DNA of 64,000 nt from Phaeosaccion multiseriatum. Its lineage: Eukaryota > Protista > Ochrophyta, other classes. Position 1 is the first letter of the stretch, and each line of letters starts with the position of its first letter. Positions 13,301-38,451 of this stretch are shown piece by piece. The position numbers and the translations under genes were made by a program. The stretch is from the NCBI GenBank assembly GCA_965112735.1, contig OZ218959.1:2294001-2358000 (forward strand), read 5' to 3'. The notes beneath the pieces are model-generated. The model worked only from the letters and a program-made list of their open reading frames with translations, was not told the origin of the DNA and did no database searches.

Positions 13301-13979
13301 CATCGTGGAGGGCGCGGAATGCTCGGCAACCTCCTTCCTCGAATCAGCTTGCTGCGGTGAGGAGGACTTCCTTGGAAGGGCCGGCGGCTTCTGCGTGGGC
13401 GACAGTACCACCACTGGCAACGGCCCCTTCATTGGTACTTGCGTGAGTCCTCGCCAAGAAGGGGAGAGCTGCTTGGGAGATTTCGACACTAACTCCTGTG
13501 ACCGAGGCCTCTTTTGCCTGGAGGGTAGCTGCGCTGCACCAGGAAATGTTGGTGATACGTGCGAGAAGGACGAATTCTTTAACAATTCGTGCGAGAGAGG
13601 ACTTCTCTGCATCGAGGGGACGTGCAGCGACAGCAGCGAGTGCCTCGTGGAGGGGGCGGAGTGCTCGGCATCCCTCTTCCGCTCATCAGCTTGCTGCGGT
13701 GACGTGAGCTTCTCTGGTGCCGGCGGCTTCTGCATCGGCGACAGTACCACTAGCAACGGCCCCTTCATTGGCACTTGCTCGGCTAGTCGTGGCCAGGAAG
13801 GGGAGAGCTGCGCGGGAGATTTACTGAACGGCTACTCCTGTGCCTCAGGCCTCTTTTGCTTGGAGGGTAGCTGCGCTGCACCAGGAGGTGTTGGTGAGAA
13901 GTGCGAGGTGGCCGAATTTGACGACTTTAACAATACGTGCGAGGGAGGACTTTTCTGCATCGAGGGGACGTGCGAGTGA
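10343..13979 (+). CDS. Secreted Cys-rich, Pro/Thr-rich (mucin-like) repeat protein, multi-exon
   Basis: ATG 10343 MRSFLGALLLSSSGFVFQ|LASAASG (signal peptide); three modules C..C..EPCF.DP.C..GIGCNA.GLG..CRFC.FS.F..CP separated by P/T/S linkers, each split by an intron; long final exon (~12657-13979) of acidic Cys repeats (GESC..C...L.C.EGSC; C..EGAECSA..F.SACCG). Confidence 0.75.
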
Positions 13980-13988
13980 TTCTAGGGG

Positions 13989-14174
13989 TGTTGTGATAAG
14001 TATCGCCATTTGTGACTGAGCACTATATCGACGTACAATATCGATGTGGATATCGATGTTCATGTATGGCCACGGCCATCACTTCCTTGAACGCATCTCT
14101 CAGTAGGTATTATTAATACACGAGTTGACACTACTCTAGCTTGTCCCTGTCATCGTAGAGGAGATATCGCAACA
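13989..14174 (+). repeat. 5' LTR of the copia element
   Basis: Identical by eye to 19208-19393. Confidence 0.97.
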
Positions 14175-14287
14175 CGACAGCTGTCGCGACACTTCACAGC
14201 TAGCTGGTTCTACGTAGTCGGCGACGGCACACAGGCGAGTTTTGGTCGGATAACTCAAGTGAGAGAGAAGGAGTCCTTTCGTTAGCC

Positions 14288-15256
14288 ATGCCAGGCGCGG
14301 AAGAAGAAGGCGTTGAAAAGGCGGACGCAGCGGCGCCCGTCAGTGCGAGTTCCGCGATAGAAGGAGACGCACAGCAGCAGATGGCTGAAATGATGGAAAA
14401 GATGATAGCGGCAGCGTTGGCCAAACACATCACACAGCAAGGAGTGCCCACGGCAGCGGCCGCAGCACCAGTCACTATCTCCTCAGTCGGAGGAACAGTG
14501 ACCCCCAGCGGGGGGGGGAGTACAGCACAGCAGCTGCTAGAACTCACGTTCAAGCCGAAGAACAATGAGTTTGACAAGAAGTTGGAATCGGAGGGAGTGA
14601 TGCCTCTCTTGCGATTTATGCGAGCGGTCACGGATCACATAGGGGGGATGGGGGCAAAGGCATTCTTGGTGGATAGTGATAAGATCCCCAACGCAGACGA
14701 CGCCTCCCGGGACTCTAAGTATGCCCTGACGTTCAGTCTGTACCAACAGACGGGCCTCAAGATTTTGGAGGCCATTCCCTCGGACATGAGGGATGCCATA
14801 GAAGAACGCACTCGCACAGCGCGGTTCCAAGTGGACCTGGTACTATTGATGCAGGCAATCAAGGAGGCAGTGATGGGGAGCACGCAGTCACAGCGACAAG
14901 AGTTTCTCACCTCCGAGATGCACGATCTGAGGCCAGGGGTGGGGGAGACGGGACTTGCCTACCTCAACAAGTTTCTCCAACTCAACGTGTTGATGACGGA
15001 GGAGCAGCTTCCTATGTCCTACTCCATCATCAAGGACAAGTTCCTCAGGCGTATGGGGCAGAGATGGGAGTCGTTCGGCCAAGTGCACGGTCATTCGGTA
15101 GAGACAGAGGACGAGTTTAATCGGTTCAAACAGCAAGTGCAGCGGTTTGACAGTGACCTCCAAGCGCAAGCGAGGGAGGCGGGAGAGGACCTTGAGCGGG
15201 GCCTTTTCCACATTTACCAGCAAAGGCAGAAGACACAGCAACCAGCAGGGGGGTAG
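14288..15256 (+). CDS. gag: Copia gag (N-terminal part)
   Basis: 322-aa ORF just downstream of the 5' LTR; the CCHC knuckles continue in the +1 frame. Confidence 0.8.
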   Translation: MPGAEEEGVEKADAAAPVSASSAIEGDAQQQMAEMMEKMIAAALAKHITQQGVPTAAAAAPVTISSVGGTVTPSGGGSTAQQLLELTFKPKNNEFDKKLESEGVMPLLRFMRAVTDHIGGMGAKAFLVDSDKIPNADDASRDSKYALTFSLYQQTGLKILEAIPSDMRDAIEERTRTARFQVDLVLLMQAIKEAVMGSTQSQRQEFLTSEMHDLRPGVGETGLAYLNKFLQLNVLMTEEQLPMSYSIIKDKFLRRMGQRWESFGQVHGHSVETEDEFNRFKQQVQRFDSDLQAQAREAGEDLERGLFHIYQQRQKTQQPAGG

Positions 15257-17426
15257 ACAGACCACCACAGGGGCAGGAGAGAAAGATCGGTCCAACACAC
15301 GCTGTTACAGGTGTGGGAGAAAGGGGCACATGCGGACGACGTGTCCGTCCAAGGAGGAGCTGTGTTTCAACTGCCACAAGCCGGGGCACCAGCGTGCAGA
15401 CTGCCCAAACAGCAGGAAGAAGAAAGATGGCGAGCATGTGGAAGGCTCCACCAGCACCATTTTCAGCATTCCGTGGACGCTACAGGAGAGGGGGAGCGGC
15501 CATTCTCTCTACCATATGTCCAAGCTGAAGTCGGGGGCGGATGGCACACGGCAGGGGCTCGCAGACAGCGGATCGGCGCTCAATGTGTGGCCCAACTTGG
15601 ATGGACTGTACGATTTCTGCGCTCATCAGAGTTTAGTGCAACTCGCAGACGGCAAGTCGCACGCGCAGATAATGGGCAAAGGGAAGGTGAACATCAGCTA
15701 CGTCTCCAACGACGGCAAAAGAGGACTGAAGGGGCTGGAGGTAGTGGTGTCGCCAGACGTACCTTTCTGCATTTTTGCAGAGAAGAACCTCTCAGACCTA
15801 CTGGGGGGGAGCGCAAGGCCAGCGGGGAAGCCAGTCTATTTCGGCCCCTCAGCAGACGCACCAGAGACGGTGCACACGACGCAGGACCCAGAGCTGGGGC
15901 TTGACATGCTACAATTCAAGATCGAGGAGGCCACGGAGCAGTGGAGTGATTACATGACTTACCACTGCAAGAAGGGCCACCGCAACGATCAAGAACTACG
16001 GCGACAGGCCAAGCTGGAAGGCGTGACACTGTGCGGGAAGAGGGCGCCGTGCAAGACTTGCGCAGAGGTGAAGATGACGAAGGCAGCTCAGAGTAAGCAG
16101 TTCATCGACTACCCCAAGGCACCGCTGGCACAGGTAACGCTCGACACCATTCCTCTCGAAGGAGAGCACGTGTTGCAGGCGTGCTGCCCGCACACGGGTA
16201 TGGGCTGGTGCAGGAAGGTGGGGGGAAAGACGGAGGCGCACTTCCAGAGCGTGTATGACGACCTCAACACCACAGTATTCATTCCAGGGGAGAGGACAGC
16301 GGGGTACAAGGTGCAGTGTCTGTCAGCAGACAACGGATCGGAGCTCATCAAGACGAAGGCCGCGAAGAAGATGCTCTACTCCCAGGGCATTGAGGTAAAG
16401 CTGACGGACCCCAATTGTCAAGCGCAGAACGGACTGAACGAGGCTCGACACAAGGAGCTGGCGCGAATGTCTATTCTTTTCATTGAGGAGGCGAAGCTGG
16501 AGGAGCACTCGAAGCAGCTGAGGTTCGTAGCGTACAAGTTGGCGCAGCTTCTCTACAACACCAGGTGCAGGAGGGGGCAGCAGCAGTCCCCCTACGAGCT
16601 GTATTTCAAGCGCAAGCCTGACCTACAGCACCTACACATCTTCGGAGAGCAGGCGAAGGTGCGGGTGGGCAACAAGAAGCACAAGCAGTGGCACAACGAC
16701 AAGACGCACTCGGCAGTGTACGTGGGACAGAGCCCCAACCACAGATCAGCCTGTCTCCTTTTCTACATCCCTTCACAGAAGCGGTTCATCTCCAGCTCGT
16801 CCTACACATTCGTGACGAACCGCAGACACGACGGCACGGTGTTCGGGAGTCACGTGGAGAAGGGGAAGCTACCAGAGACAGCGGAGAAGGAGGATGACAG
16901 CGAGGACGAGGACCAGCCCTCGAGCAGCGGGAGCAGCAGCAGGAGCAGCAGCAGGAGCAGCAGCAGGAGCAGCAGCAGTAGCGCGAGCGGGGGAGGTGGG
17001 GGCGGGACCAAGAGTGGAACCGTCACATGGAACACGAGATTAGAGGAGGCACAGCCAGCCCCACAGCAGCAACAGACATCACGCTGGGAACAGGTTCTCA
17101 CCCGAGAGTTCGTGGAGAAGTTACAACTCGAAGGAGAAGGCCTGGAGCGACGTCAGCACGCCGAGCGGCAACAGAGGGAGCAGACGGCAAAGCAGCAACA
17201 GAGAGAGCAGCAGAAACAGCAAGTAGAGCAGCAAGAGCAGCAGCAGCAGCAGGCAGAGCAGCAACAGGCAGAGCAGCAGCAGGAAGAGCCAACGCAGCAG
17301 GCTGAGCCGCCAGAGAGAGGCAAACTCTGGACATACGAGGTGGCCAAAGATGGCGACAAGGGAGCCAAGGAGCACGACTGGGGCCACGATCCCAGCCTGG
17401 GCCGCACGCGTAGCGGCAAGCACTGA
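15147..17426 (+). CDS. pol: Copia nucleocapsid, protease and integrase ORF
   Basis: Two CCHC knuckles (CYRCGRKGHMRTTC, CFNCHKPGHQRADC); protease LADSGS; integrase HHCC (YHCKKGH..CKTC) and D-D-E (TLDT, SADNGSEL, NGLNEAR). Confidence 0.92.
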   Translation: MTVTSKRKRGRRERTLSGAFSTFTSKGRRHSNQQGGRQTTTGAGEKDRSNTRCYRCGRKGHMRTTCPSKEELCFNCHKPGHQRADCPNSRKKKDGEHVEGSTSTIFSIPWTLQERGSGHSLYHMSKLKSGADGTRQGLADSGSALNVWPNLDGLYDFCAHQSLVQLADGKSHAQIMGKGKVNISYVSNDGKRGLKGLEVVVSPDVPFCIFAEKNLSDLLGGSARPAGKPVYFGPSADAPETVHTTQDPELGLDMLQFKIEEATEQWSDYMTYHCKKGHRNDQELRRQAKLEGVTLCGKRAPCKTCAEVKMTKAAQSKQFIDYPKAPLAQVTLDTIPLEGEHVLQACCPHTGMGWCRKVGGKTEAHFQSVYDDLNTTVFIPGERTAGYKVQCLSADNGSELIKTKAAKKMLYSQGIEVKLTDPNCQAQNGLNEARHKELARMSILFIEEAKLEEHSKQLRFVAYKLAQLLYNTRCRRGQQQSPYELYFKRKPDLQHLHIFGEQAKVRVGNKKHKQWHNDKTHSAVYVGQSPNHRSACLLFYIPSQKRFISSSSYTFVTNRRHDGTVFGSHVEKGKLPETAEKEDDSEDEDQPSSSGSSSRSSSRSSSRSSSSSASGGGGGGTKSGTVTWNTRLEEAQPAPQQQQTSRWEQVLTREFVEKLQLEGEGLERRQHAERQQREQTAKQQQREQQKQQVEQQEQQQQQAEQQQAEQQQEEPTQQAEPPERGKLWTYEVAKDGDKGAKEHDWGHDPSLGRTRSGKH

Positions 17427-17462
17427 CATGCTGTCTCCTCCATACTAGGCCCACTCTTTCTG

Positions 17463-19070
17463 ATGCCAGGCCTAAAGGAGAGCGAGGTACCGATACCGCG
17501 GTCTCTGGCCCAGGCTCAAGCAGGAGAGTACGCGGAGCAATGGACGGAGGCGTACTGGGCAGAGCTCAACGCGATCGAGCAACGCCAGGTATGGGAGGAG
17601 GTTGATTATCAAGAGGGGATGAATGTGCTGCATACAGTCATGCTATTCAGAGCAAAGGTGACTGGGGGACTTGTGGATAGGCTCAAGTGTCGATTTGTCG
17701 TGATGGGGAACGAGCAGATCGAGGGGGAGGATTACTTTGATACCTTTGCACCAGTGGTGGGGAGCTCGACGATGAAGATGTTCTTTGCTATCACGTGCCA
17801 GAAGAAGTGGGTATTGGAGTTTGCAGATGTGGAGACGGCTTTCCTGCATGCACCTCTGCATGAGGGGGAGTACGTGTACATTAGAGCACCAGAGGGCATG
17901 AGAAAGTTCGGGAAGGTGCTGAGGCTGTTGAAGAGTCTGTACGGTCTTCATCAGTCTCCCAAGAGGTGGAACGAGACAGTGGTGGCATTTCTACTCGCAA
18001 TGGGGTGGGTACAGTGCCCAGTGGATCCGTGTCTGTTCGCCAGGTTCGAGGAGGGGGAGCTAATAGGGCTCATCATTCTATATGTAGACGACCTAGGAGG
18101 GTCAGGGGAGGGAAATCTCATTGACTGCACTTTCAAGGAGATTGACGAGCGTTTCAAGTTGAAGCGTTTGGGGTCGAATGTGGGGAAATTTCTGGGAGTT
18201 GAAGTTGACTACGCATTCGAGGCGGGACAGCTCAGGCTTTCGCTAGGAGGGTATCTTAGAGCGATGCTTGAGAAGTTCGACATGACGGAGGTACCTGTGT
18301 ACGGCTCACCAGCAGAGCAGGGGGTACATTTGTCAGTGGGTATGGAGCCAAGCACCACAGAGGAGGAGGAATTCATGCAGGACAAACCATACTGCTCAGC
18401 GGTAGGGTCAATCCTATGGGTTGCCAACTGGGTGAGGCTTGATGTATCCTTCGCCATCATGCAGTGTGCTCGTTTTATGAAGAGGCCGGGGCCTCGACAC
18501 TGGGCAGCATTGCAGCGCATTTTCGGGTACTTTAGAGGTAGTTTAGACTTGGGAATTGAGTTTGATCGAGAGGCGGGGCTTCATCTGGAGGCATACGCAG
18601 ACTCGAGCTGGGCAGATGACGTCGACAGGCGCAGGAGCTCAGGGGGATACGTCGTGACATTCGGCGGGGGAGTGATTGCTCACAAGGCAACACTATTTAA
18701 GGTCATAGCACAGTGCTCTATGGAGAGTGAGTACATGGCCGCAGCGGAAGCAGTGAAGGAGTTGCTGTTTCACAGAGGGATTCTGGAGTTTCTGTTTCCA
18801 GGAGCCAACATGACGGAGTCGATTGTGCACGAGGACAATCAAGGGTGCATTCAGATGGCAAATGGCAACGCGGGCACCAAGCGCGTACGTCACATCGACA
18901 TTCGTTATCATTTCCTGCAGTACCACGTGGACAAGGGACACGTTCGGTTTCAGTACATCAGCACAAAGGACCAGCTTGGGGACATCATGACCAAGGCATT
19001 GGCACCTCAGGTACACAGCGGTCTGGCGGGGCAGATGCTCAAGAAGGGAGACAGGAAAGGGGGGGACTAG
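17463..19070 (+). CDS. pol: Copia reverse transcriptase and RNase H, in frame with the upstream ORF across one TGA
   Basis: RLKCRFVVMG, ADVETAFLH, LLKSLYGLHQSP, LYVDDL; RNase H YADSSWA, SMESEY, EDNQG, RHIDIRYHF, DIMTKAL. Confidence 0.95.
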   Translation: MPGLKESEVPIPRSLAQAQAGEYAEQWTEAYWAELNAIEQRQVWEEVDYQEGMNVLHTVMLFRAKVTGGLVDRLKCRFVVMGNEQIEGEDYFDTFAPVVGSSTMKMFFAITCQKKWVLEFADVETAFLHAPLHEGEYVYIRAPEGMRKFGKVLRLLKSLYGLHQSPKRWNETVVAFLLAMGWVQCPVDPCLFARFEEGELIGLIILYVDDLGGSGEGNLIDCTFKEIDERFKLKRLGSNVGKFLGVEVDYAFEAGQLRLSLGGYLRAMLEKFDMTEVPVYGSPAEQGVHLSVGMEPSTTEEEEFMQDKPYCSAVGSILWVANWVRLDVSFAIMQCARFMKRPGPRHWAALQRIFGYFRGSLDLGIEFDREAGLHLEAYADSSWADDVDRRRSSGGYVVTFGGGVIAHKATLFKVIAQCSMESEYMAAAEAVKELLFHRGILEFLFPGANMTESIVHEDNQGCIQMANGNAGTKRVRHIDIRYHFLQYHVDKGHVRFQYISTKDQLGDIMTKALAPQVHSGLAGQMLKKGDRKGGD

Positions 19071-19207
19071 TTTTAGTTCAGTAGTTTTAGTATGAGGTTT
19101 TCAGGACTTTGTCTCGGGGGGGTTTTAGGGCAAGTCAGGTGTTTCCTCATTGTGTTTGTGGTAGAGTGTCAGCTATCAAGAGAGATAGTGATTCAGTCAT
19201 AGGAGGG

Positions 19208-19393
19208 TGTTGTGATAAGTATCGCCATTTGTGACTGAGCACTATATCGACGTACAATATCGATGTGGATATCGATGTTCATGTATGGCCACGGCCATCA
19301 CTTCCTTGAACGCATCTCTCAGTAGGTATTATTAATACACGAGTTGACACTACTCTAGCTTGTCCCTGTCATCGTAGAGGAGATATCGCAACA
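19208..19393 (+). repeat. 3' LTR of the copia element
   Basis: Identical by eye to the 5' LTR; followed by TSD AGGGG. Confidence 0.97.
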
Positions 19394-20339
19394 AGGGGAG
19401 AGCAGAGTGCTCAGCCCTCTCCTGCCGGAGCAGCTCAGCTTGCGGTGGTGATGTCACCACCCGGAGAGGTGGCGGCTTCAGTGTTGACGAGGAGGACTTT
19501 CGCACGTCCACTTCCAAGCAATGGCTGCGTCAGATAGTAAGGCAGTGGTAGTAGGAAGGCTGGGAAGTCGTCGCCAAGACGGAGCGCTCTGAGCGGAAGA
19601 GAGCTCGCAGGACAAGCAGTGGTGGTGGTGTATCTCTTCCCTTTGTTACCATGCACTTCATAGAATTTCATTAACAGTACTTACTTGTTATAAAGAGAAG
19701 AAAAAAATGTTAGTCAGAGCGAGCGAGAAACATTCCTCTGCTGCTCCCCTCCCCTCCGCTCCTCCGCTCCAAAGCGAGTACCCACTGCTGTAGCCACACG
19801 CTCGCTCTCTTGGGGCTTCCTGCAGTACCGTCCAGCCCAGGCACACAGATAAGATTGACATATATAGTGAATGTGTTCTGCCTTTTTCGGATCACTCACT
19901 CACAGTTACGGAAATCCCTGACTTATGTCCACCTGGATATAAGGGGGATATATCAGGGATATATATATAGAGCTGCCCACGCACCTATCTCACTATACCC
20001 CTTATCGAATAGTCTCTACGTTGTTTATAGCCCGTACGTGTCAACCTCAGTAGTCTCTTCTATCCATTCTCAGTCGGGTTATCAACCCCTTGTGCTCTTC
20101 ACTCTACACTTCTCTTCTCCTCTTAGTCAAGTCTTCTTCTTCTCTCGTCTGCCTGCGGGCAGGCCGGACTGGCTGTCTCCGTCTCTCCTTCGGCTCGCTT
20201 GTCATCCCGTAAGTACTACAACAAAGATATCATGTGTGCCGGAGCTCTTGATGCCTTGAGATGAAAACAACCCGCACCCCCCCCTCCTGTCTTCCGCCAA
20301 CCTCCCCCCCTCTCCGCGCGCTGACTTAGGTACTGAATC

Positions 20340-23470: not shown

Positions 23471-25267
23471 TCCTTTCCCTTGTTCTTTTGGCCTGACTGC
23501 TGTAATTGTCGTAGCTACCGTAGGGTTCTCTCCCTCTCTCCCTCTCCCTCTCCCTCTCCCTCTCCCTCTCTCTCGGTGCATGCTTTTCTCCCTCTTTCTC
23601 TGCAATAACACACCCACTCCCCCCCCCCCTCTCCCCTCTCTCAAACAAACGGCTGGTGCATAATTCATTGGCTTCTCAGCGCCGGCGTACCTGTCCTGTT
23701 TGCCGCCTCGAACTTCCTTCCCAAGACGCCGACGCCGAAGCTGCCCGGCAGAGGAGAGCGAGGGCAAGGGAAGGTGCAGAGGACTGGAACGACTGGTTCT
23801 CGTAGCTTGACAGGAAGGCCACGACGAAAGGATGGTAAAAGAGAGCTGACTCGATCATGCACGCGTGTTGTGGGCCCACCTTGGAGGAGACGAGTGGAGT
23901 GGGAGGTGCCAAGCAATCCAAGGGCCTCTGACGGAAGGGGAATGGGAGCATGTCTTTGGGCTTCGGGCAGACAAGTCAGACAAGTATGTCTGCTTTGTTG
24001 ACCACCGTGGTGGGGTGGAGGCCGCTGGAAAGGAGACTCCGTTACTCGAGCATTTGCTGCCGTGTGCTACTTGCGGTGCGGTTTCTGCTGCTGTTACTGT
24101 GGACATGTATTGCTCTGTTCGACCCCTGACACGCTATCCGCTATCCGCTATCGAGAAAGTGGGCGATAGCGTGTCAGGGGTCGAACACATACACACACAC
24201 ACACACACACACGCACCCACACTTCCGAACCTCCATGATGGGTTATTCATGTCATAAGTTACTTTCGGATATACACCCACTCCTGCGGAGACCCTCTTGT
24301 CTCGTCTCGCGAGTGCTTCTGCTGAGGGACGAAGGAGTTACATCTCTCCCCTCTCACTCTCCGTCGCCACTCCCCTAAGTAGCCAAAAATCCCGCCCCCC
24401 TTCTATTGACTGTTGGAAGGCCTCAGATGAGATGGTCCTTAATGGTCGGTGTGTCCTATACTACATAGATTCTGAGTGGCAACGGGCCGCTCAGTAATAG
24501 GTGAACTTGGTAAGGAGAGCCTAGCAGCAGGGCTTGCAAACGTGTTCCATCCCGGCTAATATACTGAGTGTTACCACTTGTCTAAGCGACTCTAGTCGCT
24601 TTTACATGACATACTACACCCTTACACCTCCCACTCCCCCACGGCTTCCTGGCTCTTGCTCCACAGCAGCTCCATGTTGTCCTTATTGTTGAAACGCTCA
24701 TCGATGGGCAGGTTCACCGCAGGGCCCCAGCAGCCCCCCATCTTGGTGCATCCGTAGTACTCCCCCGACTTGACCTCGGGCATGAAGGCACAAGTAAGGA
24801 TGCCGCAGGTGCCGTCCTCTGAGCTCTGGGCAAGCATACGTATGCCCCCGACCGCGAACTTTGGCATACCCCCTGACGGTGTGTGTGTGCGAGAGAGAGA
24901 GAGAGAGAGAGAGAGTGCGTGAGTGAGTAAGTGAGGAAGTGTGTGTGTGAGAGAGAGATTGAGTGAGTAGGTGAGTTTGTGTGTGCGTGTGAGAGAGATT
25001 GAGTAAGTAAGTGCGTGTGTGTGTGTGTGCGTGTGTATGGAAAAGGAAGGAGAGACACGACGAGGGGGCGAGGCAAGCGCGTGGTTCATTTAAAAGACAA
25101 TGTGGCTACATGAGGTACAGTTTTGAATGAAATGTGGCAATCGGGTCGTGTTGCGAGAACAAAGACAAGCATCCTGCCATCCACTGCCATGGCTTGGCTG
25201 TGACATCCACTGCCACCGCGTGGGTGTACATAAGATCATGTGAAACATCACGTACCGTCCGTCACAG

Positions 25268-25886
25268 TGTTAGAAGTCGTGCTTTTGCTAGACTGGTACC
25301 TACCCTCTGAATTTAGACCGGGAGGTATCAGTCTAGCAAAAGTACGACTTCTAACAAGACCGTTGCTAGAAGACGAACCCCCCCCCCCCACCGCACATAG
25401 TGGAGAGAAGTAACTCGCAGTCTGAGAATCAGCATCATGGGCCAGCAAGCTGGTAACAGTTTTCGCCGAAAAATACGCTTTTTCACAAGCTACAGCCAGG
25501 GTTCGAACTCGCAATGGCCTTGTGTTAGAAGTCGTGCTTTTGCTAGACTGGTACCTACCCTCTGAATATTAAAAAAAAAATTAATATTCAGAGGGTAGGT
25601 ACCAGTCTAGCAAAAGCACGACTTCTAACACAAGGCCATTGCGAGTTCGAACCCTGGCTGTAGCTTGTGAAAAAAGTGTGTTTTTCGGCGAAAACTGGTA
25701 CCGGCTGGCACCCATTAGTCTGATTCCCAGACTGCGAGTTACTTCTCTCCACTATGTGCGGTGGGGGGGGGGGGGTTCGACTTCTAGCATTAGGGCTTGT
25801 TAGAAGTCGTGCTTTTGCTAGACTGGTACCTCCCGGTCTGAATTCAGAGGGCAGGTATCAGTCTAGCAAAAGTACGACTTCTAACA
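25268..25886. mobile_element. Non-coding palindromic (triple-hairpin) insertion element A, 619 bp, 4-bp TSD
   Basis: Ends TGTTAGAAG...CTTCTAACA; TSD ACAG at 25264-25267 and 25887-25890. Removing the element and one TSD restores NLAMPTVTD, the same length as NLVTTTGTD in the paralogs. Hairpins at 25268-25356, 25523-25630 and 25798-25886. Confidence 0.92.
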
Positions 25887-26127
25887 ACAGTTGGCATTGC
25901 CAGATTGGTGGCGGATAGTCCCGGGTGCCCACACACGGACTTCACCTGCAGCGGTACGTACCACCAACCGTACCACCAAGAACAACAGGACCGAGCAGGA
26001 GAGGAGGGAGAGGGTTCGTCGTTCGCTTTTGTGATGTTGTGATGAACAACCACCCTGGTCACCCACACTCACACCCAAATTCACACCTGCCAGCCGAGCT
26101 CGGGAGGGGAAAGTGTGATGGTGCTTG

Positions 26128-27050
26128 TGTTACGATATAAGGCATCCCAATATGCCTTCAGTATTATCCAAACGTTTGGATAATACTGAAGGCATATTGG
26201 GATGCCTTATATCGTAACAAAAGGTGAGTTCCTTGAGCCCTACACCTTCGCACCGGGGGGTTGGCGCTACCGACACGTTCGTCCCTAAATACTGTCCCTT
26301 TGTTTATCCCACCAGTTTTCACGTGCTTTTTTCAACAGGGTACGACCCTCTGGTATCTCCTTGGGAACCCCCCTCGGGAAACATCATATTATTTTTTTCT
26401 CTTTCCTCAGGTAGGACTCGAACCCCTCTTTCCTCAGGTAGGACTCGAACCCCTCTTTTGTTACGATATAAGGCATCCCAATATGCCTTCAGTATTATCC
26501 AAACGACTCGAACCCCTCTTTCCTCAGGTAGGACTCGAACCCCTCTTTCCTCAGGTAGGACTCGAACCCCTCTTTTGTTACGATATAAGGCATCCCAATA
26601 TGCCTTCAGTATTATCCAAACGGATATCCATTTTTTTAAAAATTTTTTTTTTTAAAAAAATGGATATCCGTTTGGATAATACTGAAGGCATATTGGGATG
26701 CCTTATATCGTAACAAAAGAGGGGTTCGAGTCCTACCTGAGGAAAGAGGGGTTCGAGTCCTACCTGAGGAAAGAGGAAAAAATAATATGATGTTTCCCGA
26801 GGGGGGTTCCCAAGGAGATACCAGAGGGTCGTACCCTGTTGAAAAAAGCACGTGAAAACTGGTGGGATAAACAAAGGGACAGTATTTAGGGACGAACGTG
26901 TCGGTAGCGCCAACCCCCCGGTGCGAAGGTGTAGGGCTCAAGGAACCCACCTTTTGTTACGATATAAGGCATCCCAATATGCCTTCAGTATTATCCAAAC
27001 GCGCGTTTGGATAATACTGAAGGCATATTGGGATGCCTTATATCGTAACA
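26128..27050. mobile_element. Non-coding palindromic (triple-hairpin) insertion element B, 923 bp, 5-bp TSD
   Basis: Ends TGTTACGATAT...ATATCGTAACA; TSD GCTTG at 26123-26127 and 27051-27055; absent from the paralogous intron (single gcttg near 31000). Hairpins at 26128-26219, 26576-26715 and 26955-27050; 117-bp tandem duplication in the left arm. Confidence 0.92.
26723..26760 (+). promoter_or_regulatory. Tandem Pol III B-box-like motifs GGTTCGAGTCC in 27-bp repeats (mirrored on the minus strand at ~26400-26572)
   Basis: Match to the B-box consensus GGTTCGANTCC; unit GAGGGGTTCGAGTCCTACCTGAGGAAA. Confidence 0.55.
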
Positions 27051-29208
27051 GCTTGCTGCTGCTTATCCAAAGACCTCAGCTAAACTACAAAACACACACG
27101 CCTCAATGAAAATGCTTGTACTTTGGAGTGCTGTAACGTGTGTGTTTTTAGGGGGCGAAGAGTGGCTGATGGAGAGAGAGGGGAAGGGAGAAGACTGGAG
27201 AGGCAAGATGGGGGGGGGGATAGATGGAGAGGGAGAGGAAGGAGAGACAGAGACAACCCACAAACCACCCAACTAACCAACCAACCAACCAACCAACTAA
27301 CCAGCCTACCACCCGACCTCACCTTGGAGCCTTTGGTTTGGAGCTTCTGGTGCAGAGCCTGGGCGAAAACGATGTTGGCCTGCTTCGTCTGGACGGAGAG
27401 GGAGGGACGGGGGTACAGCAGATAGAAGAGACAGGACGAGCGGGGGATGGTGGGGGATCCGCAGGAGGGGAGGAGGGGGGGGAAAGGAAGGGGCGGGGTT
27501 CTATATCTCTCCCTCTCTTCTCTATAACCGAAAAGCAACAGACAGAAGGTTAGCTATAACCCAATCCACACTCACCTGCTGGTATCGTACCCACCGGGGG
27601 CCCTTCATCCCCCCAGCCGTCGAATCTCCCCCCAAGTCTCCCCCCTTCTTCTCCAAGTACTTGGCCTCCAGTGCCTTCGGCTGGTTGGCGGCTATGCTGG
27701 AGTGGCTCACTATGCGAGCTTCGCCCTTGCTCTCGGCCGCCTTTTCCAACAGGGGGAAGAGCTCCTTGCTGAGCATGAAGTGACTGAGGTGATTCGTCTG
27801 CCAGCCATTTGAGATTGCCATAGACAAGAGGGAGGGGGGGGGGGGGGTGAGGAGGTGCTGGAGACAATAGGGGTTGAATACCAGTGCCAAAGGCAGGCAG
27901 GCAGGGAGGGAGGGAGGGCGGGAGGGAGCGTAGCTTGAAGTGCTGCTTTGACCCCCTTGCATCTCTGCCACGTGCAGTGTGCACTAGGTTGGCATTCGAA
28001 GACACTAAAAGTATCCATCTTCATCTTCCCGAGCGAGATGCTCTTCCATGGCGTGAGGAGAAGAAACGAGGTGTGCTAGAGACGGACAGACCCGATCGGC
28101 AGTGTGGTGTGTCATCTCACCTGCATCTGAATGTCGTAGCCATCTTTTGTCGCTTTGTCGGCCATCGCCCTGTGCTCCCCCATAGAGATGGAGAGAGAGA
28201 AAGAGAGAGGGACAGAGAGAGAGAAAGAGAGAGAGAGGGAGAGGGAGAGAGGGAAAGAGAGGGAGAGGGAGGGAGAGGGAGAGGAAGAGGAAGATGGAGA
28301 GAGAGAGAGCGGGAGAGAGATAAAGAGATAGAGAAGAGAGAAAGAGAGAGCCGTGCATGTAGGGTGAGCCCAAAGCCAAAGCCAAACAAGGAAAGGCCAA
28401 CGAAGGCCAAGGAAGGCCAAGCAGCAGTAGAGGGCGCACCGCGCACCCCCCCTGACTCACAGCCCATTCACAGCGGACTCACATGATGCCTGCATTGTTC
28501 ACAAGCACATCGATCCCGCTCTTTGCGTACGCGGCCTTGATGGCGTCGATGGCGCTCTTGACAGACGCAAAGTCCTGCAAGTCGCAGTCTATCTGGGATA
28601 TCTTGGAGCTTGCACCGAGCTGCTCCTTCAGGTCCGCGAGGATCTTCTCAGATCTGTGTGTGTGGGGAGGGAGTGAGGAGTGGGTGGGGGGTGAGCGGTG
28701 GGGCACGAGCAAGCTCTCTTTGTCTCGAGTGGTGGGGCAAGGAGACAGTGTCTCTCCCTCTCTCTCCCTCTCTCTCTCGTTCTCTCTCCGGATTGATCAC
28801 TTTCGTGGCTTCAATTCCCTCCCTCGTCTCGTCTGCCCATTCCGTCTTGTTGCAGAAACCATCATCCCCTGTGCCAAGCCCCCCCCCCCCCCCTCTCCGG
28901 CTCTTCAAATGAACACACAGCACACGCACCTCTCGCTCCTTCTGTTAAGCATCACCACCTCTGCACCCTTCTCGGCAGCGGTCCGAGCAAACACTTCACC
29001 CGTTCCGGAGGTGGTGCCTGTGATCACAACCACCTTGCCATCCGCACTCGGGAGTTGGCTCAGCAACTTTGGGTATTGCACGGACTTCTTCGTGCCGGAG
29101 AAAGTGCCCCCCATGGTGAAATCTGGACGTCGAAAGAGACAGAGAAGGGAGCGACAGAGTGAGAGAGAGAAGAGTCGGCAGGGTGCGCGTGAGAGAAAGA
29201 GAGATGAG

Positions 29209-29246
<38 letters not shown>

Positions 29247-29330
29247 GTAGAGAAGAAGCGACGGAGTGAAGAGAGAGAAGAGAGGACAGGTTGCGAGGGA
29301 GAGAAGACAGGGCAGGGTGCGAGAGAGAAC

Positions 29331-29361
<31 letters not shown>

Positions 29362-30121
29362 AGAAAAGAGAAAAAGAAAAAATGGCGTGCGATTGATTTC
29401 GCCAAAACCCCCGCATTCCAGACCCTCCTGCGACGCTCTTTCCTTACCGCTGCTGGGGTTGGTGAGGTGCGATACACTTGGGGACGACTTGGGTGCGACT
29501 TTCCTCCTTGGTGAGCTACAATGGTCGTCGTATTATTTTTTACGTCAGAGTGGCTGGCTGGCCATTTCTTACTATGTCAACGATTCTCTCCTTCCTCCTC
29601 TATCACACACACTCCACACCTTTGGGTGGCCGCCTGTCCCTCCTCACATCCGTTGCGCGGGGGGGCATGTCGGTCCTGGCCGAGTTCTCCCTTGTTCGGC
29701 GGCGGTCGCTTCGGCGGCCTCCGCCGTTCGGGGTCTACTCTTGGTTCTCCAACAATCGTGCACGCGTCCCCCCTCCTCCTCACCATGACACTCTCGTCTC
29801 ACACACACATACACTTTCAGTTTCCCCCCATCACCATCACTACTATCGGATACCGGGTACCTCCGCCACCTTCGCTGACTGATTCAACCTCCAACCTCCC
29901 AGCCACTTCTGTCCCATCCCATCGCCCACCATCGCCTTCCTCGCTCGCACCTCTTGTAAAAGTAATCACCGTCCCCCCTTCAAAATCGTTGATATAAAGG
30001 ATACTCCTCACACACCCTTGAGAGTACATCTCTCCTGTCCGTCTGTCCGTCGCCACCCCCCCCCCTGGCTGAGCAGCCACAAGAATGCCCCACCCTTTCT
30101 GTTGACATACTACATACACCC

Positions 30122-31134
30122 TTACACCTCCCACTCCCCGACCGCTTCCTGGCTCTTGCTCCACAGCAGCTCCATGTTGTCCTTACTGTTGAAACGCTCA
30201 TCGATGGGCAGGCTCACCGAAGGTCCTGTGCAGCCCCCCATCTTGGTGCATCCGTAGTACTCCCCCGACTTGACCTCGGGCATGAACGCACAAGTGAGGA
30301 TGCCGCAGGTGCCGTCCTCTGAGCTCTGGGAGAACATACGTATGCCTGCTGTCGTGAACCTTGACACGCCCCCTGACAGCGTGTGTGTGCGCATATATAT
30401 ATGTACGTGTGTGTGTGTGCGCGCATGCGTGTGTGTGAGTGTATACGTGTGTGAGCGTATGTGTATGTCATGTGTATGTGCATGTGGAGAGGAAAGGAAA
30501 GTACAAGTATTAAAATCGCGTTGCCTAGCAGATTTGAACGACGTATGATGCCCAAATGTGTGAGACCTGCCGCATATATGTGTGTCCTGCAGTGCCTTTT
30601 GCAGCTTGGCGGATGGGTATGCAACTGTCCATTTCTCATGTCATTGGTACATAGCGGAGGCTGGCTCGTCCAGCCCTCGGTGAGGCGGTTGGCAATAAGA
30701 TAAGATAAGACATGTTTTGTGTTTCGCGAGGACAGAGACAAGCATGGAATGACATCCACTGCCGTCGTTTGGGTCTACGTATATAAAGATTACGTACCAT
30801 CCGTCCCCGTTGTGGTGACCAGATTTGTGGCGGACATTCCCGGATGCGCGCACACAGACTTCACCTGCATCGTTGTGTAGCCATACCACCAACCACAAAA
30901 AGACAAAGAAAGGGAGAGGAGGGAGAGGAGGGAGAGGTTCACGTTCCTGCTTGCGGTTACGCCCACCAGAGCCGAGCTCGGGAGAACAAAGTACGATGGC
31001 GCTTGACACTTGACATGCGGCTTCTTTGCTAAAGACTTCACACATAATATCCCAACATGCAGAATGTTTCCCAAAAGACTGTGCGCTGGGGAGTGTAACG
31101 GGCGTGTATGTGGAGGAAGCGTGCTGGAAAGAGA

Positions 31135-31185
<51 letters not shown>

Positions 31186-33047
31186 GAGACAGAGTTTACC
31201 CACCAACCAACCAACCAACCAACCAACTAACCCACCAACCTACCACCCGAACTCACCTTGGAGCCTTTGGTTTGGAGCTTCTGGTGCAGAGCCTGGGCGA
31301 AAACGATGTTGGCCTGCTTCGTCTGGACGGAGAGGGAGGGAGGGGGGGGACAGCAGAGAGCAAAGGAGCGCGTCATAGTCGGATCGAGACGGGAAGTGCC
31401 CATTTCATCTCCCACCCCCCTCTTCTCACTCTCCCTCTCTCACTCTCGCTCTCTCTTCTCTCTAACCTAAAACCAACAGTAGGTAGGTGGGGGTAAACAA
31501 TCCAATCCACACTCACCTGTCCGTATCGTACCCACCGGGGGCTCTTAAACCCCCCAGCCGTCGAATCTCCCCCCAAGTCTCCCCCCTTCTTCTCCAAGTA
31601 CTTGGCCTCCAGTGCCTTCGGCTGGTTGGCGGCTATGCTGGAGTGGCTCACTATGCGAGCTTCGCCCTTGCTCTCGGCCGCCGTTTCCAACAGGGGGAAG
31701 AGCTCCTTGCTGAGCATGAAGTGACTGAGGTGATTCGTCTGCCAGCCATTTGTGATTGTCATAGACAAGAGGGAGGGGGGGGGGGGGATGAGGAGGTGCT
31801 GCAGCCAACAGGGGTTGAATACCAGTACCAAAGGCAGGCAGGCAGGGAGCGAGGGCGGGAGGGAGCGTAGCTTGAAGTGCTGCTTTGACCCCCTTGCATC
31901 TCTGCCACGTGCAGTGTGCACTAGGTTGGCATTCGAAGACACTAAAAGTATCCATCTTCATCTTCCCGAGCGAGATGCTCTTCCATGGCGTGAGGAGAAG
32001 AAACGAGGTGTGCTAGAGACGGACAGACCCGATCGGCAGTGTGGTGTGTCATCTCACCTGCATCTGAATGTCGTAGCCATCTTTTGTCGCTTTGTCGGCC
32101 ATCGCCCTGTGCTCCCCCATAGAGATGGAGAGAGAGAAAGAGAGAGGGACAGAGAGAGAGAAAGAGAGAGAGAGGGAGAGGGAGAGAGGGAAAGAGAGGG
32201 AGAGGGAGGGAGAGGGAGAGGAAGAGGAAGAGGGAGAGAGAGAGAGCGGGAGAGAGATAAAGAGATAGAGAAGAGAGAAAGAGAGAGCCGTGCATGTAGG
32301 GTGAGCCCAAAGCCAAAGCCAAACAAGGAAAGGCCAACGAAGGCCAAGGAAGGCCAAGCAGCAGTAGAGGGCGCACCGCGCACCCCCCCTGACTCACAGC
32401 CCATTCACAGCGGACTCACATGATGCCTGCATTGTTCACAAGCACATCGATCCCGCTCTTTGCGTACGCGGCCTTGATGGCGTCGATGGCGCTCTTGACA
32501 GACGCAAAGTCCTGCAAGTCGCAGTCTATCTGGGATATCTTGGAGCTTGCACCGAGCTGCTCCTTCAGGTCCGCGAGGATCTTCTCAGATCTGTGTGTGT
32601 GGGGAGGGAGTGAGGAGTGGGTGGGGGGTGAGCGGTGGGGCACGAGCAAGCTCTCTTTGTCTCGAGTGGTGGGGCAAGGAGACAGTGTCTCTCCCTCTCT
32701 CTCCCTCTCTCTCTCGTTCTCTCTCCGGATTGATCACTTTCGTGGCTTCAATTCCCTCCCTCGTCTCGTCTGCCCATTCCGTCTTGTTGCAGAAACCATC
32801 ATCCCCTGTGCCAAGCCCCCCCCCCCTCTCCGGCTCTTCAAATGAACACACAGCACACGCACCTCTCGCTCCTTCTGTTAAGCATCACCACCTCTGCACC
32901 CTTCTCGGCAGCGGTCCGAGCAAACACTTCACCCGTTCCGGAGGTGGTGCCTGTGATCACAACCACCTTGCCATCCGCACTCGGGAGTTGGCTCAGCAAC
33001 TTTGGGTATTGCACGGACTTCTTCGTGCCGGAGAAAGTGCCCCCCAT
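30122..33047 (-). CDS. SDR copy 2 (intact; chimeric)
   Basis: Same 7 exons, YGQ|TK; MGGTFS start resembles an N-myristoylation motif. Confidence 0.9.
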
Positions 33048-33141
33048 GGTGAAATCTGGACGTCGAAAGAGACAGAGAAGGGAGCGACAGAGTGAGAGAG
33101 AGAAGAGTCGGCAGGGTGCACGTGAGAGAAAGAGAGATGAG

Positions 33142-33181
<40 letters not shown>

Positions 33182-34050
33182 GTAGAGAAGAAGCGACGGA
33201 GTGAAGAGAGAGAAGAGAGGACAGGTTGCGAGGGAGAGAAGACAGGGCAGGGTGCGAGAGAGAACAGAGAGAGAGAGAGAGAGAGAAGAGAGAAAAGAGA
33301 AAAAGAAAAAATGGCGGGCGATTGATTTCGCCAAAACCCCCGCATTCCAGACCCTCCTGCGACGCTCTTTCCTTACCGCTGCTGGGGTTGGTGAGGTGCG
33401 ATACACTTGGGGACGACTTGGGTGCGACTTTCCTCCTTGGTGAGCTACAATGGTCGTCGTATTATTTTTTATGTCAGAGTGGCTGGCTGGCCATTTCTTA
33501 CTATGTCAACGATTCTCTCCTTCCTCCTCTATCACACACACTCCACACCTTTGGGTGGCCGCCTGTCCCTCCTCACATCCGTTGCGCGGGGGGGCATGTC
33601 GGTCCTGGCCGAGTTCTCCCTTGTTCGGCGGCGGTCGCTTCGGCGGCCTCCGCCGTTCGGGGTCTACTCTTGGTTCTCCAACAATCGTGCACGCGTCCCC
33701 CCTCCTCCTCACCATGACACTCTCGTCTCACACACACATACACTTTCAGTTTCCCCCCATCACCATCACTACTATCGGATACCGGGTACCTCCGCCACCT
33801 TCGCTGACTGATTCAACCTCCAACCTCCCAGCCACTTCTGTCCCATCCCATCGCCCACCATCGCCTTCCTCGCTCGCACCTCTTGTAAAAGTAATCACCG
33901 TCCCCCCTTCAAAATCGTTGATATAAAGGATACTCCTCACACACCCTTGAGAGTACATCTCTCCTGTCCGTCTGTCCGTCGCCACCCCCCCCCCTGGCTG
34001 AGCAGCCACAAGAATGCCCCACCCTTTCTGTTGACATACTACATACACCC

Positions 34051-35063
34051 TTACACCTCCCACTCCCCGACCGCTTCCTGGCTCTTGCTCCACAGCAGCT
34101 CCATGTTGTCCTTACTGTTGAAACGCTCATCGATGGGCAGGCTCACCGAAGGTCCTGTGCAGCCCCCCATCTTGGTGCATCCGTAGTACTCCCCCGACTT
34201 GACCTCGGGCATGAACGCACAAGTGAGGATGCCGCAGGTGCCGTCCTCTGAGCTCTGGGAGAACATACGTATGCCTGCTGTCGTGAACCTTGACACGCCC
34301 CCTGACAGCGTGTGTGTGCGCATATATGTATGTACGTGTGTGTGTGTGTGCGCGCATGCGTGTGTGTGAGTGTATACGTGTGTGAGCGTATGTGTATGTG
34401 CATGTGGAGAGGAAAGGAAAGTACAAGTATTAAAATCGCGTTGCCTAGCAGATTTGAACGACGTATGATGCCCAAATGTGTGAGACCTGCCGCATATATG
34501 TGTGTCCTGCAGTGCCTTTTGCAGCTTGGCGGATGGGTATGCAACTGTCCATTTCTCATGTCATTGGTACATAGCGGAGGCTGGCTCGTCCAGCCCTCGG
34601 TGAGGCGGTTGGCAATAAGATAAGATAAGAACATGCGGTGGTGTTTTGTGTTTCGCGAGGACAGAGACAAGCATGGAATGACATCCACTGCCGTCGTTTG
34701 GGTCTACGTATATAAAGATTACGTACCATCCGTCCCCGTTGTGGTGACCAGATTTGTGGCGGACATTCCCGGATGCGCGCACACAGACTTCACCTGCATC
34801 GTTGTGTAGCCATACCACCAACCACAAAAAGACAAAGAAAGGGAGAGGAGGGAGAGGAGGGAGAGGTTCACGTTCCTGCTTGCGGTTACGCCCACCAGAG
34901 CCGAGCTCGGGAGAACAAAGTACGATGGCGCTTGACACTTGACATGCGGCTTCTTTGCTAAAGACTTCACACATAATATCCCAACATGCAGAATGTTTCC
35001 CAAAAGACTGTGCGCTGGGGAGTGTAACGGGCGTGTATGTGGAGGAAGCGTGCTGGAAAGAGA

Positions 35064-35106
<43 letters not shown>

Positions 35107-36936
35107 GAGACAGAGTTTACCCACCAACCAACCAACCAACCAACCAACTAACCCACCAACCTACCACCCGAACTCACCTTGGAGCCTTTGGTTTGGAGCT
35201 TCTGGTGCAGAGCCTGGGCGAAAACGATGTTGGCCTGCTTCGTCTGGACGGAGAGGGAGGGAGGGGGGGGGACAGCAGAGAGCAAAGGAGCGCGTCATAG
35301 TCGGATCGAGACGGGAAGTGCCCATTTCATCTCCCACCCCCCTCTTCTCACTCTCCCTCTCTCACTCTCGCTCTCTCTTCTCTCTAACCTAAAACCAACA
35401 GTAGGTAGGTGGGGGTAAACAATCCAATCCACACTCACCTGTCCGTATCGTACCCACCGGGGGCTCTTAAACCCCCCAGCCGTCGAATCTCCCCCCAAGT
35501 CTCCCCCCTTCTTCTCCAAGTACTTGGCCTCCAGTGCCTTCGGCTGGTTGGCGGCTATGCTGGAGTGGCTCACTATGCGAGCTTCGCCCTTGCTCTCGGC
35601 CGCCGTTTCCAACAGGGGGAAGAGCTCCTTGCTGAGCATGAAGTGACTGAGGTGATTCGTCTGCCAGCCATTTGTGATTGTCATAGACAAGAGGGAGGGG
35701 GGGGGGGGGATGAGGAGGTGCTGCAGCCAACAGGGGTTGAATACCAGTACCAAAGGCAGGCAGGCAGGGAGCGAGGGCGGGAGGGAGCGTAGCTTGAAGT
35801 GCTGCTTTGACCCCCTTGCATCTCTGCCACGTGCAGTGTGCACTAGGTTGGCATTCGAAGACACTAAAAGTATCCATCTTCATCTTCCCGAGCGAGATGC
35901 TCTTCCATGGCGTGAGGAGAAGAAACGAGGTGTGCTAGAGACGGACAGACCCGATCGGCAGTGTGGTGTGTCATCTCACCTGCATCTGAATGTCGTAGCC
36001 ATCTTTTGTCGCTTTGTCGGCCATCGCCCTGTGCTCCCCCATAGAGATGGAGAGAGAGAAAGAGAGAGGGAGAGAAAGAGAGGGACAGAGAGAGAGCAAG
36101 AGAGAGAGAGAGGGAGAGGGAGAGAGAGAAAGAGAGGGAGAGGGAGGGAGAGGGAGAGGAAGAGGAAGAGGGAGAGAGAGAGCGGGAGAGAGATAAAGAG
36201 ATAGAGAAGAGAGAAAGAGAGAGCCGTGCATGTAGGGTGAGCCCAAAGCCAACGCCAAACAAGGAAAGGCCAAGGAAGGCCAACGAAGGCCAAGCAGCAG
36301 GAGAGGGCGCACGGCGCACCCCCCCTGACTCACAGCCCATTCACAGCGGACTCACATGATGCCTGCATTGTTCACAAGCACATCGATCCCGCTCTTTGCG
36401 TACGCGGCCTTGATGGCGTCGATGGCGCTCTTGACAGACGCAAAGTCCTGCAAGTCGCAGTCTATCTGGGATATCTTGGAGCTTGCACCGAGCTGCTCCT
36501 TCAGGTCTGCGAGGATCTTCTCAGATCTGTGTGTGTGGGGAGGGAGTGGGGAGTGGGGAGTGGGTGGGGGTTGAGTGGTGGGGCAAAAGTGTCTCTCCCT
36601 CTCTCTATTTTCAGGATCGATGACCTTCGTGGCTTCAATTCCCTCCCTCGTCTCGCCTGCCCATTCCGTCTCGTTGCAGAAACCATCATCCCCTGTGCCA
36701 AGCCCCCCCCTCCCCTCTCCGGCTCTTCAAATGAACACACAGCACACGCACCTCTCGCTCCTTCTGTTAAGCATCACCACCTCTGCGCCCTTCTCGGCAG
36801 CGGTCCGAGCAAACACTTCACCCGTTCCGGAGGTGGTGCCTGTGATCACAACCACCTTGCCATCAGCACTCGGGAGTTGGCTCAGCAGCTTTGGGTATTC
36901 CACGGACTTCTTATTGGCGGAGAAAGTGCCCCCCAT
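34051..36936 (-). CDS. SDR copy 3 (intact)
   Basis: Same 7 exons; start MGGTFSANKKSVEYP; repeat unit ~3.93 kb. Confidence 0.9.
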
Positions 36937-37156
36937 GGTGAAATCTGGAGGTGGAGAGAGAAAGAGAAGGGAGCGACAGAGTGAAGAGAAAGAGAAGAGA
37001 TGGCAGGGTGCGCGAGAGAGAAAGAGAGAGAGAAACAGAGAGTGAGTGAGTGAGAGAGAGAGAGAGGCAGAGAGAGGCAGAGAAGAAGCGACAGAGTGAA
37101 GAGAGAGAAAGAAAGAAAGAGCGAGGCAGAGAGAGGCAGAGAAGAAGCGACAGAGT

Positions 37157-37203
<47 letters not shown>

Positions 37204-38451
37204 AGAGAGAGAGAAGAGAGGGCAGGGTTCGAGGGAGAGAAGAGAGGGCAGGGTGAGAGAGAGAACAGAGAGGAGAGGAGAAAAAATGGCGGGCGATTGA
37301 TTTTGCCAAGCCCCCGCAAATCCCCCGCATTCCAGGCCTCCCTTCCACTCTCTTTCCTTACCGCTGCTGGGGTTGGTGAGGTGTGATACACTTGGGGATG
37401 GCTTCGGTGCGTCTTTTCTTTTTGGTGAGCTGCAATGATGGTGTATCACTTTTTGTCCGAGTGAAGACGGACACGGCCGGAGGGTTTGATCCATGTAGTA
37501 TGTCAGCAAATATCGATGCTCGAGTTGGGGTTTCGAAATCGAAATCTCTCCAGGGGTGTGGCTGTGCCCACAAAGACAGACAATTGTAAACACCCACCTC
37601 TACACCAAGGTGAGAAAACGGGCCAGGAAAGCGGGGATTACGAGTGGGGGAGGGGAGGATGAAGATGCCGTGGAAATTTCATCCGGTAGCCTCGCGGTGT
37701 GGGCGAAGTTGGGGGGCTGCAAAAGTCTCTCGTGTGTCTGCATAGCTTTTCCCTCCACCCAGAGAAGGCGGTTGGATTGAGGGCCGGTGACGCTAGCGGA
37801 TGCGTGGAATGACTTGAGCAATCAGCGCATACCTCGCTCCCCCTGTTCTGCTTGTGAGGGGCCATCCTACAATACCTTAGTGTCTGTTTATCCTTCTTCT
37901 CTGGATACGATCTGGATACCACGATGGAGCGGGGATGGCGTGGTGTTCGTCGCCTTGTACGCCCACGACTAACGTGGAATGCGCTGTGAAGGCGTCATTT
38001 CCTTGGGTTTGTTTGAGCTGTTTGTATTCCAGCCTACATGAAGCGTCGTCTGTACTACCAACAAGACCCTGCTCACCTCCCTTGTCCCTTCACACCCTTC
38101 ATCACTCCCTCGCCATCAGCACAGCCAAATACGCTCCGCGCCACAGACCTGAGGAGCTACAGCAGGCAGGAGTACTAGCAAGGCAAAGGACGAGGAGGGG
38201 GGTTCGAGAGAGACGGGCGGTGTTTGGCCTTTTGGCCCACGCAGTGGCAGCAGCCTAAGGGGGCCGCCCGGCTCTGCACAGGCACTACACAGGCACTACG
38301 CTCGGCATCCGGAGGGACATGGACGTTTCATTTCTCCGCCCAATGCGATAGAAGGCTGCTGGGAGCCAGCGTGTGGGTGGGGGAAGGGGGGGGAGGGAGT
38401 GACAGCGGTGTGGCGGAAACTGGAGCTTGGGAGGCGTAGTTGCGGAACATC

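Follow-up and report, generated by a model that had tools for sequence, protein, structure and literature searches.

Palindromic foldback-type elements with integrase-type ends in a 64-kb window that also carries a young copia retrotransposon

Two palindromes, A and B, each inserted as a single unit into the window (the whole 64-kb stretch of DNA that was analysed), with a staggered cut of 4 bp for A and 5 bp for B. Both are probably non-autonomous, non-coding foldback-type mobile elements, and a solo hairpin, C, is probably another. A DDE enzyme of the retroviral integrase superfamily very probably inserted A and B, judging by TGTT..AACA ends that fit the TGTTRNR motif and by TSDs of 4 and 5 bp. 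The likeliest mover is, at a little under even confidence, a Ginger2/TDD-like cut-and-paste transposase whose gene would lie elsewhere in the genome. The start of B matches one end of a copia element in the same window at 10 of 11 bases, and this match is too short and generic to show that copia moves B.

Insertion and anatomy of the palindromes

Elements A and B occupy an intron of a minus-strand, short-chain-dehydrogenase-like gene. This host gene is one unit of a tandem array (minus strand, window positions 24600-37600) that repeats about every 3.9 kb. Units 2 and 3 of the array are 97.7% identical, and the unit with A and B is about 84-90% identical to both. The two other paralogous units have neither A nor B; their flanks are continuous across the sites, with a flank identity of 84%, and the B target GCTTG is single in each (31001-31005 and 34930-34934). 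These empty sites in the tandem array identify A and B as insertions with the boundaries given in Table 1. Each family has one copy in the 64 kb, and the rest of the window contains no further copy of either module. Exact-pattern scans found no copy of the B module in metagenome, viral and prokaryote genome contigs, and no copy of the A module in metagenome and viral contigs.

Table 1. Positions of the mobile elements, their component parts and the paralogous empty sites in the window
Feature	Position	Strand	Description
Copia 5' LTR	13989-14174	+	3' LTR at 19208-19393; each 186 bp, 100% identical
Copia ORF	15147-17426	+	Zinc knuckle, protease region, divergent integrase; closed by in-frame stop
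Copia RT ORF	17463-19070	+	
Hairpin C	24116-24187	.	72-bp solo palindrome, ends TGTTCGACC...GGTCGAACA (TGTT...AACA)
Element A	25268-25886	.	619-bp palindrome, ends TGTTAGAAG...CTTCTAACA
A TSD	left 25264-25267, right 25887-25890	.	ACAG
Element B	26128-27050	.	923 bp, non-coding, near-perfect palindrome, ends TGTTACG...CGTAACA
B TSD	left 26123-26127, right 27051-27055	.	GCTTG
B left terminal hairpin	26128-26219	.	46-47-bp module M joined directly to the inverse of M
B arm X	26220-26458	+	Inverse X' at 26716-26954
B tandem duplication	26399-26632	+	117 bp, left arm only; supplies seventh M copy (26459-26505)
B central hairpin	26576-26715	.	M, A/T-rich palindromic spacer with T6 loop, inverted M; -76.2 kcal/mol
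B right terminal hairpin	26955-27050	.	As left terminal hairpin, with 4 additional tip bases (CGCG)
Empty paralogous site for A	30797-30815, second 34726-34744	+	
Empty paralogous site for B	30995-31009, second 34924-34938	+	

The sequences of A and B are unrelated and their layout is identical. From end to end, module M and its inverse form a first terminal hairpin of about 90 bp; arm X leads from it to a central hairpin, and the inverted arm X' leads on to the second terminal hairpin. In the central hairpins the same end module surrounds an A/T-rich spacer, and the homopolymer loop is T6 in B and A8 in A. TGTT...AACA bounds every hairpin of both elements, and the TSD flanks the whole element only. 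Each terminal hairpin repeats its partner in both orientations, direct and inverted. Full arms measure about 300 bp in A and 380-500 bp in B.

Element B starts with TGTTACGATAT at 26128, and its other end is the exact inverse. Seven perfect copies of module M are present in B, and the DNA fold of the left terminal hairpin has an energy of -50.4 kcal/mol (z = -23). Arm against arm, B differs by one mismatch, the 117-bp duplication and a 4-bp indel at the tip of the terminal hairpin. The arms finish in two 27-bp tandem units containing the B-box-like sequence GGTTCGAGTCC, which occurs in the window only in B. A tRNA-derived Pol III (SINE-like) element is not indicated, because no A box was seen by eye upstream of GGTTCGAGTCC and ARAGORN and Rfam found no tRNA.

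Element A starts with TGTTAGAAGTC. Its end module is present in six copies, and each terminal hairpin is accompanied by a further, degenerate copy placed 8 bp inside it. Between the arms, identity is essentially complete over the inner 113 bp and about 93% over the outer portions. Arm-to-arm transitions in A, read on the plus strand, comprise eight G.T and two A.C (one-sided binomial p = 0.055, not significant). The two terminal hairpins (25268-25356 and 25798-25886) have identical stems, with two G.T wobbles in the same (direct) orientation. Their bulged tip, roughly 21 nt, is inverted between the two in a flip/flop-like manner. When the terminal hairpins are compared by eye with the central copy, five of the six distinguishing transitions resemble C-to-T changes at CpA on the plus strand.

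Hairpin C is about 1 kb from A and has no recognisable TSD. Its first 15 bases match a motif beside the central hairpin of A (25644-25658, mirrored at 25495-25509) at 12 of 15 positions. A, B and C are all located within 3 kb, and no such palindrome occurs in the rest of the window. None of the three has coding capacity, a tRNA (ARAGORN, Rfam) or a curated RNA family, and Rfam reported no family at the gathering score. The motif GTTCGA is enriched in A, B and C, and in A one GTTCGA is part of a degenerate internal copy of the end motif. A permissive Rfam scan gave only sub-threshold matches, nearly all to plant or animal miRNA-precursor models; we rejected a miRNA-precursor reading because such generic scores are expected of any perfect long hairpin.

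The end of element B and the copia LTR

The copia element extends from 13989 to 19393 and is flanked by the TSD AGGGG (13984-13988 and 19394-19398). Its U5 end, ATATCGCAACA at 14164-14174, reads inward as TGTTGCGATAT, and its U3 end is TGTTGTGATAAG. The copy is young, as its LTRs are fully identical. Despite this identity, an in-frame TGA at 17424-17426 splits the integrase ORF from the RT ORF. The reading frames of copia gag and of the ORF that follows it differ by a +1 offset, and the two overlap at 15147-15256 (within the region 14288-19070). The integrase ORF is open, and its second catalytic D and E align with those of other copia integrases; the integrase core has no Pfam rve match even at E = 10. 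The closest relative of the RT is 45% identical. As a protein anchor the RT had no match in genome or viral contigs, and exact look-ups of two ORFs from the window also gave no match.

A preliminary description of this DNA proposed that the termini of B mimic the attachment ends of the copia element. It was correct on the start of B, the match of 10 of 11 bases to U5, the U3 end, the distinct end of A and the TSD lengths (5 bp for B and copia, 4 bp for A). Over longer stretches the match of B to the inward U5 sequence is 10/14 and 10/16, with identity ending at base 11, and against the copia terminal inverted-repeat consensus TGTTGYGATA it is 9/10. The 11-base match to U5 is specific to B (A matches at 5/11 and C at 4/11). 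A search of the window for the B 11-mer with one mismatch or fewer finds the seven B modules, the two U5 ends and nothing else (expected anywhere, 0.17).

Chance similarity was estimated with an end-anchored test conditioned on TGTT, which is common to all five ends. The probability that at least six of the next seven bases match after TGTT is 0.0013 under uniform base frequencies and 0.0014 in a composition-aware estimate. Of the 357 TGTT sites in the background, about one independent site per LTR end matches as well as B does. The end match has a chance p of about 0.001-0.003 per comparison, and of roughly 0.01-0.02 for two LTR ends and three palindromic families. Matches of 10/11 to U5 do arise by chance in this window, as the background sequence TGTTGGGATAT (31047-31057 and 34976-34986, minus strand) has this identity to copia U5 and is not an element end.

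Beyond the terminal 11-mer, B and copia have nothing else in common in these comparisons. When A, B, C and their modules were aligned by Smith-Waterman to the LTR and to the complete copia element, the scores fell within the shuffled range, and short-word BLAST of A, B and C against copia returned nothing past the 11-mer. B and copia have no primer-binding site, polypurine tract, leader, R or LTR body in common; the sequence following the left hairpin of B and that preceding the right one are not similar to the LTR-adjacent regions of copia, and no purine tract is present upstream of TGTT. Lacking a shared primer-binding site, polypurine tract, R or packaging region, B has no visible route into linear cDNA in a copia particle. 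B as a deletion derivative of copia was considered and rejected, since the terminal 11-mer alone is shared. The end match is suggestive rather than compelling, a borderline case marginally beyond chance. With a borderline p and identity that ends at base 11, mimicry of the copia ends by B is not established.

Candidate enzymes and modes of origin

Profiles of LTRs identify TGTTRNR...YNYAACA as a general integrase recognition motif, and it is the terminal 8-15 bp that carry the specificity of an integrase (PMC3601003). Ginger1 and Ginger2/TDD DNA transposons have TGTNR ends (PMC2836005). Ginger2/TDD elements have TIRs of 45-297 bp and TSDs of 4 bp in metazoa and 5 bp in TDD-4/5, and short non-autonomous derivatives exist (PMC2836005). 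The ends of B (TGTTACG) and A (TGTTAGA) fit both TGTTRNR (PMC3601003) and TGTNR (PMC2836005), and their first five bases are alike (TGTTA). The TGTNR termini expected of Ginger2/TDD are thus present in A and B. The module length of 46-47 bp falls within a TIR range of about 45-300 bp, with the full arms of B above the published range. The TSDs of 4 bp (A) and 5 bp (B), confirmed by the empty sites, are the two lengths found in this group. The AT-rich target preference (RTATAY / TATA) is not seen at ACAG and GCTTG, which are only two insertions, and the preference was described for metazoan families.

The preliminary description named equally good matches to many unrelated LTR ends, as a sign of chance similarity, among the outcomes that would refute its proposal. 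This has come about in part. B matches the published end of an unrelated insect Ginger2 MITE (Ginger2_NA, Bombyx/Rhodnius; PMC3845634, Table 1) at 9 of 11, 12 of 14 and 12 of 16 bases. At 11 bases it is about equal to copia U5, and at 14-16 bases it is better (12/16 compared with 10/16 over 16 bases). The TGTTRNR end is generic, and short matches between LTR and TIR ends are no sign of partnership unless joined by genome-wide evidence.

Ginger2/TDD is ranked first because this superfamily alone covers TGTNR ends, long TIRs and both TSD lengths, and because A and B look like one class. The internal copies of the end module also argue for this ranking, as a sequence-specific transposase could make use of them and an LTR integrase would have no use for them. 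Reiterated end modules are typical of DNA transposons with several transposase-binding sites. In the mechanism we propose, a DDE enzyme would recognise the TGTTRNR...CA ends and insert each element by a staggered cut of 5 bp for B and 4 bp for A. The reiterated end modules inside the arms may serve as extra transposase-binding sites, or they may be alternative ends that would yield solo hairpins such as C. The identity of B to U5 at 10 of 11 bases would then combine a motif common to the substrates of the superfamily with a few bases of chance or convergent identity.

Several findings count against a Ginger2/TDD-like mover. The match to the copia end, at a p of about 0.01-0.02, would have to be coincidence or convergence, and the terminal hairpins of A share their stem markers in direct (LTR-like) orientation. 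The window has no other copy of the modules, and no integrase-like transposase besides that of copia is visible among its ORFs, which were checked in part against Pfam. The targets are not AT-rich, and in the literature we found no Ginger element or other DNA transposon with perfect-hairpin ends.

Integration of B in trans by the integrase of this copia element or a close relative, through U5-like ends, with A inserted by a different integrase that makes 4-bp TSDs, is an unlikely alternative. The U5 identity and the 9/10 match to TGTTGYGATA, both specific to B, are consistent with it, as are the 5-bp TSDs of B and copia, the young copia copy and its open integrase ORF with the second catalytic D and E aligned. 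A recognition site confined to the terminal 8-15 bp (PMC3601003) would also suit it. Against it, the p of the match after multiplicity is only about 0.01-0.02 with identity ending at base 11, and the Ginger2 MITE end fits better across 14-16 bases. The reiterated internal ends would be roleless, and the copia copy itself shifts frame after gag and meets an in-frame stop ahead of RT. A copia integrase acts solely at the ends of linear cDNA made in the particle, and LTR integrases do not excise chromosomal DNA. Ginger2/TDD is ranked above copia because an LTR integrase needs linear cDNA ends and B has no feature for reverse transcription in a copia particle.

Of the proposed integration of B in trans, the part that calls for an integrase-superfamily enzyme is upheld by the TGTT..AACA ends and the TSDs, and the assignment to copia specifically is not, with the 11-mer alone being shared. 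A separate 4-bp-TSD integrase for A found no support. A and B have a common layout and both begin with TGTTA, and Ginger2/TDD covers TSDs of 4 and 5 bp; the two elements therefore need not use different enzyme classes, and one class is suggested. A general strategy of parasitising integrases, also suggested earlier, is likewise unsupported, as it draws on two single copies in one window. If the copia integrase truly moves B, then B would be the first case of a hairpin-built, non-LTR element that parasitises the integrase of an LTR retrotransposon, and about 11 terminal bases would suffice to hijack the enzyme in vivo. The likelier reading adds an unusual triple-hairpin foldback layout to the integrase-related (Ginger/TDD-like) DNA transposons, from an unsampled protist lineage.

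Several known systems are similar to A and B in part. Ginger2/TDD elements and their MITEs (Ginger2-1N1_NV, and Ginger2_NA of Bombyx and Rhodnius) are like A and B in TGTNR termini, TIR length, 4- or 5-bp TSDs and the existence of short non-coding derivatives. However, the sources consulted describe neither Ginger ends that form perfect terminal hairpins nor a third central hairpin, and A and B have both. Metazoan Ginger2 elements also prefer AT-rich targets, unlike A and B, to which no transposase is linked. Non-autonomous LTR elements (TRIM, LARD, SMART and Cassandra) are like B in having TG..CA ends that fit TGTTRNR, a 5-bp TSD and an enzyme supplied in trans. B does have terminal repeats with TG..CA ends and a TSD (GCTTG) in the 4-6-bp range of TRIM and LARD. 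However, it has no primer-binding site or polypurine tract beside the repeats and no shared LTR or leader, its identity with a partner is at most 11 bases, and the whole of B is an inverted rather than a direct repeat.

Foldback and long-TIR families (Drosophila FB, Galileo, Tetris and IR/DR-type Tc1) have two long inverted arms, internal repeats of the end motif and no coding sequence. A and B likewise have long, internally repetitive inverted arms without an ORF. These families differ in their end motifs, in belonging to the MULE, P and Tc1 superfamilies, and in having 7-9-bp or TA TSDs; a TSD of about 9 bp (7-8 bp in Galileo/P) is expected for foldback and MULE elements, whereas the TSDs here are 4 and 5 bp. 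KolobokP composite-like elements (PMC9587614) also have terminal units bounded by short inverted repeats, solo units and unit-internal-unit multimers. They differ in having a Kolobok transposase, other ends and TSDs, and terminal units that are long direct repeats instead of 90-bp hairpins (PMC9587614). Dimers of the parvovirus rolling-hairpin type have the order hairpin, genome, turn-around hairpin, inverted genome and hairpin, with a tip flip as in A. In contrast, A and B are chromosomal with TSDs, have no replication gene, and the stem markers of A are unflipped. Overall, A and B are unusual representatives of the integrase-related foldback or MITE-like transposons; the proposal of an integrase-type enzyme is supported, and copia specifically is undemonstrated and not favoured.

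Another improbable reading, though less so than those that follow, makes A and B turn-around (snap-back) dimers: a hairpin-ended replicon would have primed its own copying, and a borrowed integrase would have inserted the product. A single-stranded hairpin-X-hairpin primed from its 3' hairpin would give hairpin-X-hairpin-X'-hairpin, and the order of parts in A and B is exactly that of the rolling-hairpin turn-around form. The terminal and central hairpins of both families have the same stem with different tips and A/T homopolymer loops at the centres; the flipped tip of the A terminal hairpins and the excess of G.T over A.C transitions in A also point this way. However, the stem markers of A do not flip with the tip, as they would in true hairpin transfer, and the 8:2 bias does not reach significance. 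Neither a Rep/HUH gene nor a polymerase gene was found, and no second copy shows monomers or higher multimers. TSDs are not known from rolling-hairpin replicons.

It is even more doubtful that A and B are an undescribed hairpin-ended class in which self-primed snap-back copying makes turn-around dimers, every hairpin carries imitation LTR ends, and a resident LTR integrase (copia for B) performs the insertion. If this were true, such elements would be integrase parasites at the DNA level, with no need of a primer-binding site or polypurine tract.

Perfect short palindromes trigger fold-back inverted duplication, and the solo hairpin C 1 kb away would suit an origin in place, in which small hairpin MITEs inserted and fold-back replication errors then inverted and duplicated the surrounding DNA; this least probable of the readings is rejected because A and B are each bounded as a whole by TSDs and the empty paralogous sites have no arm sequence, and the lack of TSDs at the inner hairpins and the identical layout of two unrelated families also speak against it.

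Genomic setting of the locus

The window is DNA of a eukaryote other than human, and it contains a single LTR retrotransposon, of the copia type, along with several arrays of tandem genes. An RPB2 gene with introns is located at about 39.9-46 kb of the window, and the nearest relative of one RPB2 exon ORF (searched singly, by reference) is 69% identical. The copia insertion point is 9 bp past the stop codon of a 465-aa ORF (12582-13979) that is internally repetitive, with DNA periods of about 93 and 350 nt, and has no Pfam match.

Another tandem array extends from 53600 to 63900 on the minus strand; it comprises four or more paralogous ORFs, each about 362 aa long, at about 90-95% DNA identity. 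By eye these encode multi-pass membrane proteins, and they have no Pfam family match. A perfect 12-bp microsatellite of about 1.4 kb at 56057-57616 has an open frame that reads (SLTH)n, with a GC skew of -0.72. A dispersed repeat of about 350-450 bp is present at 2237-2688 and, inverted, at 53936-54283 and 59546-59993 (79-87% identical), and it may represent another repeat family.
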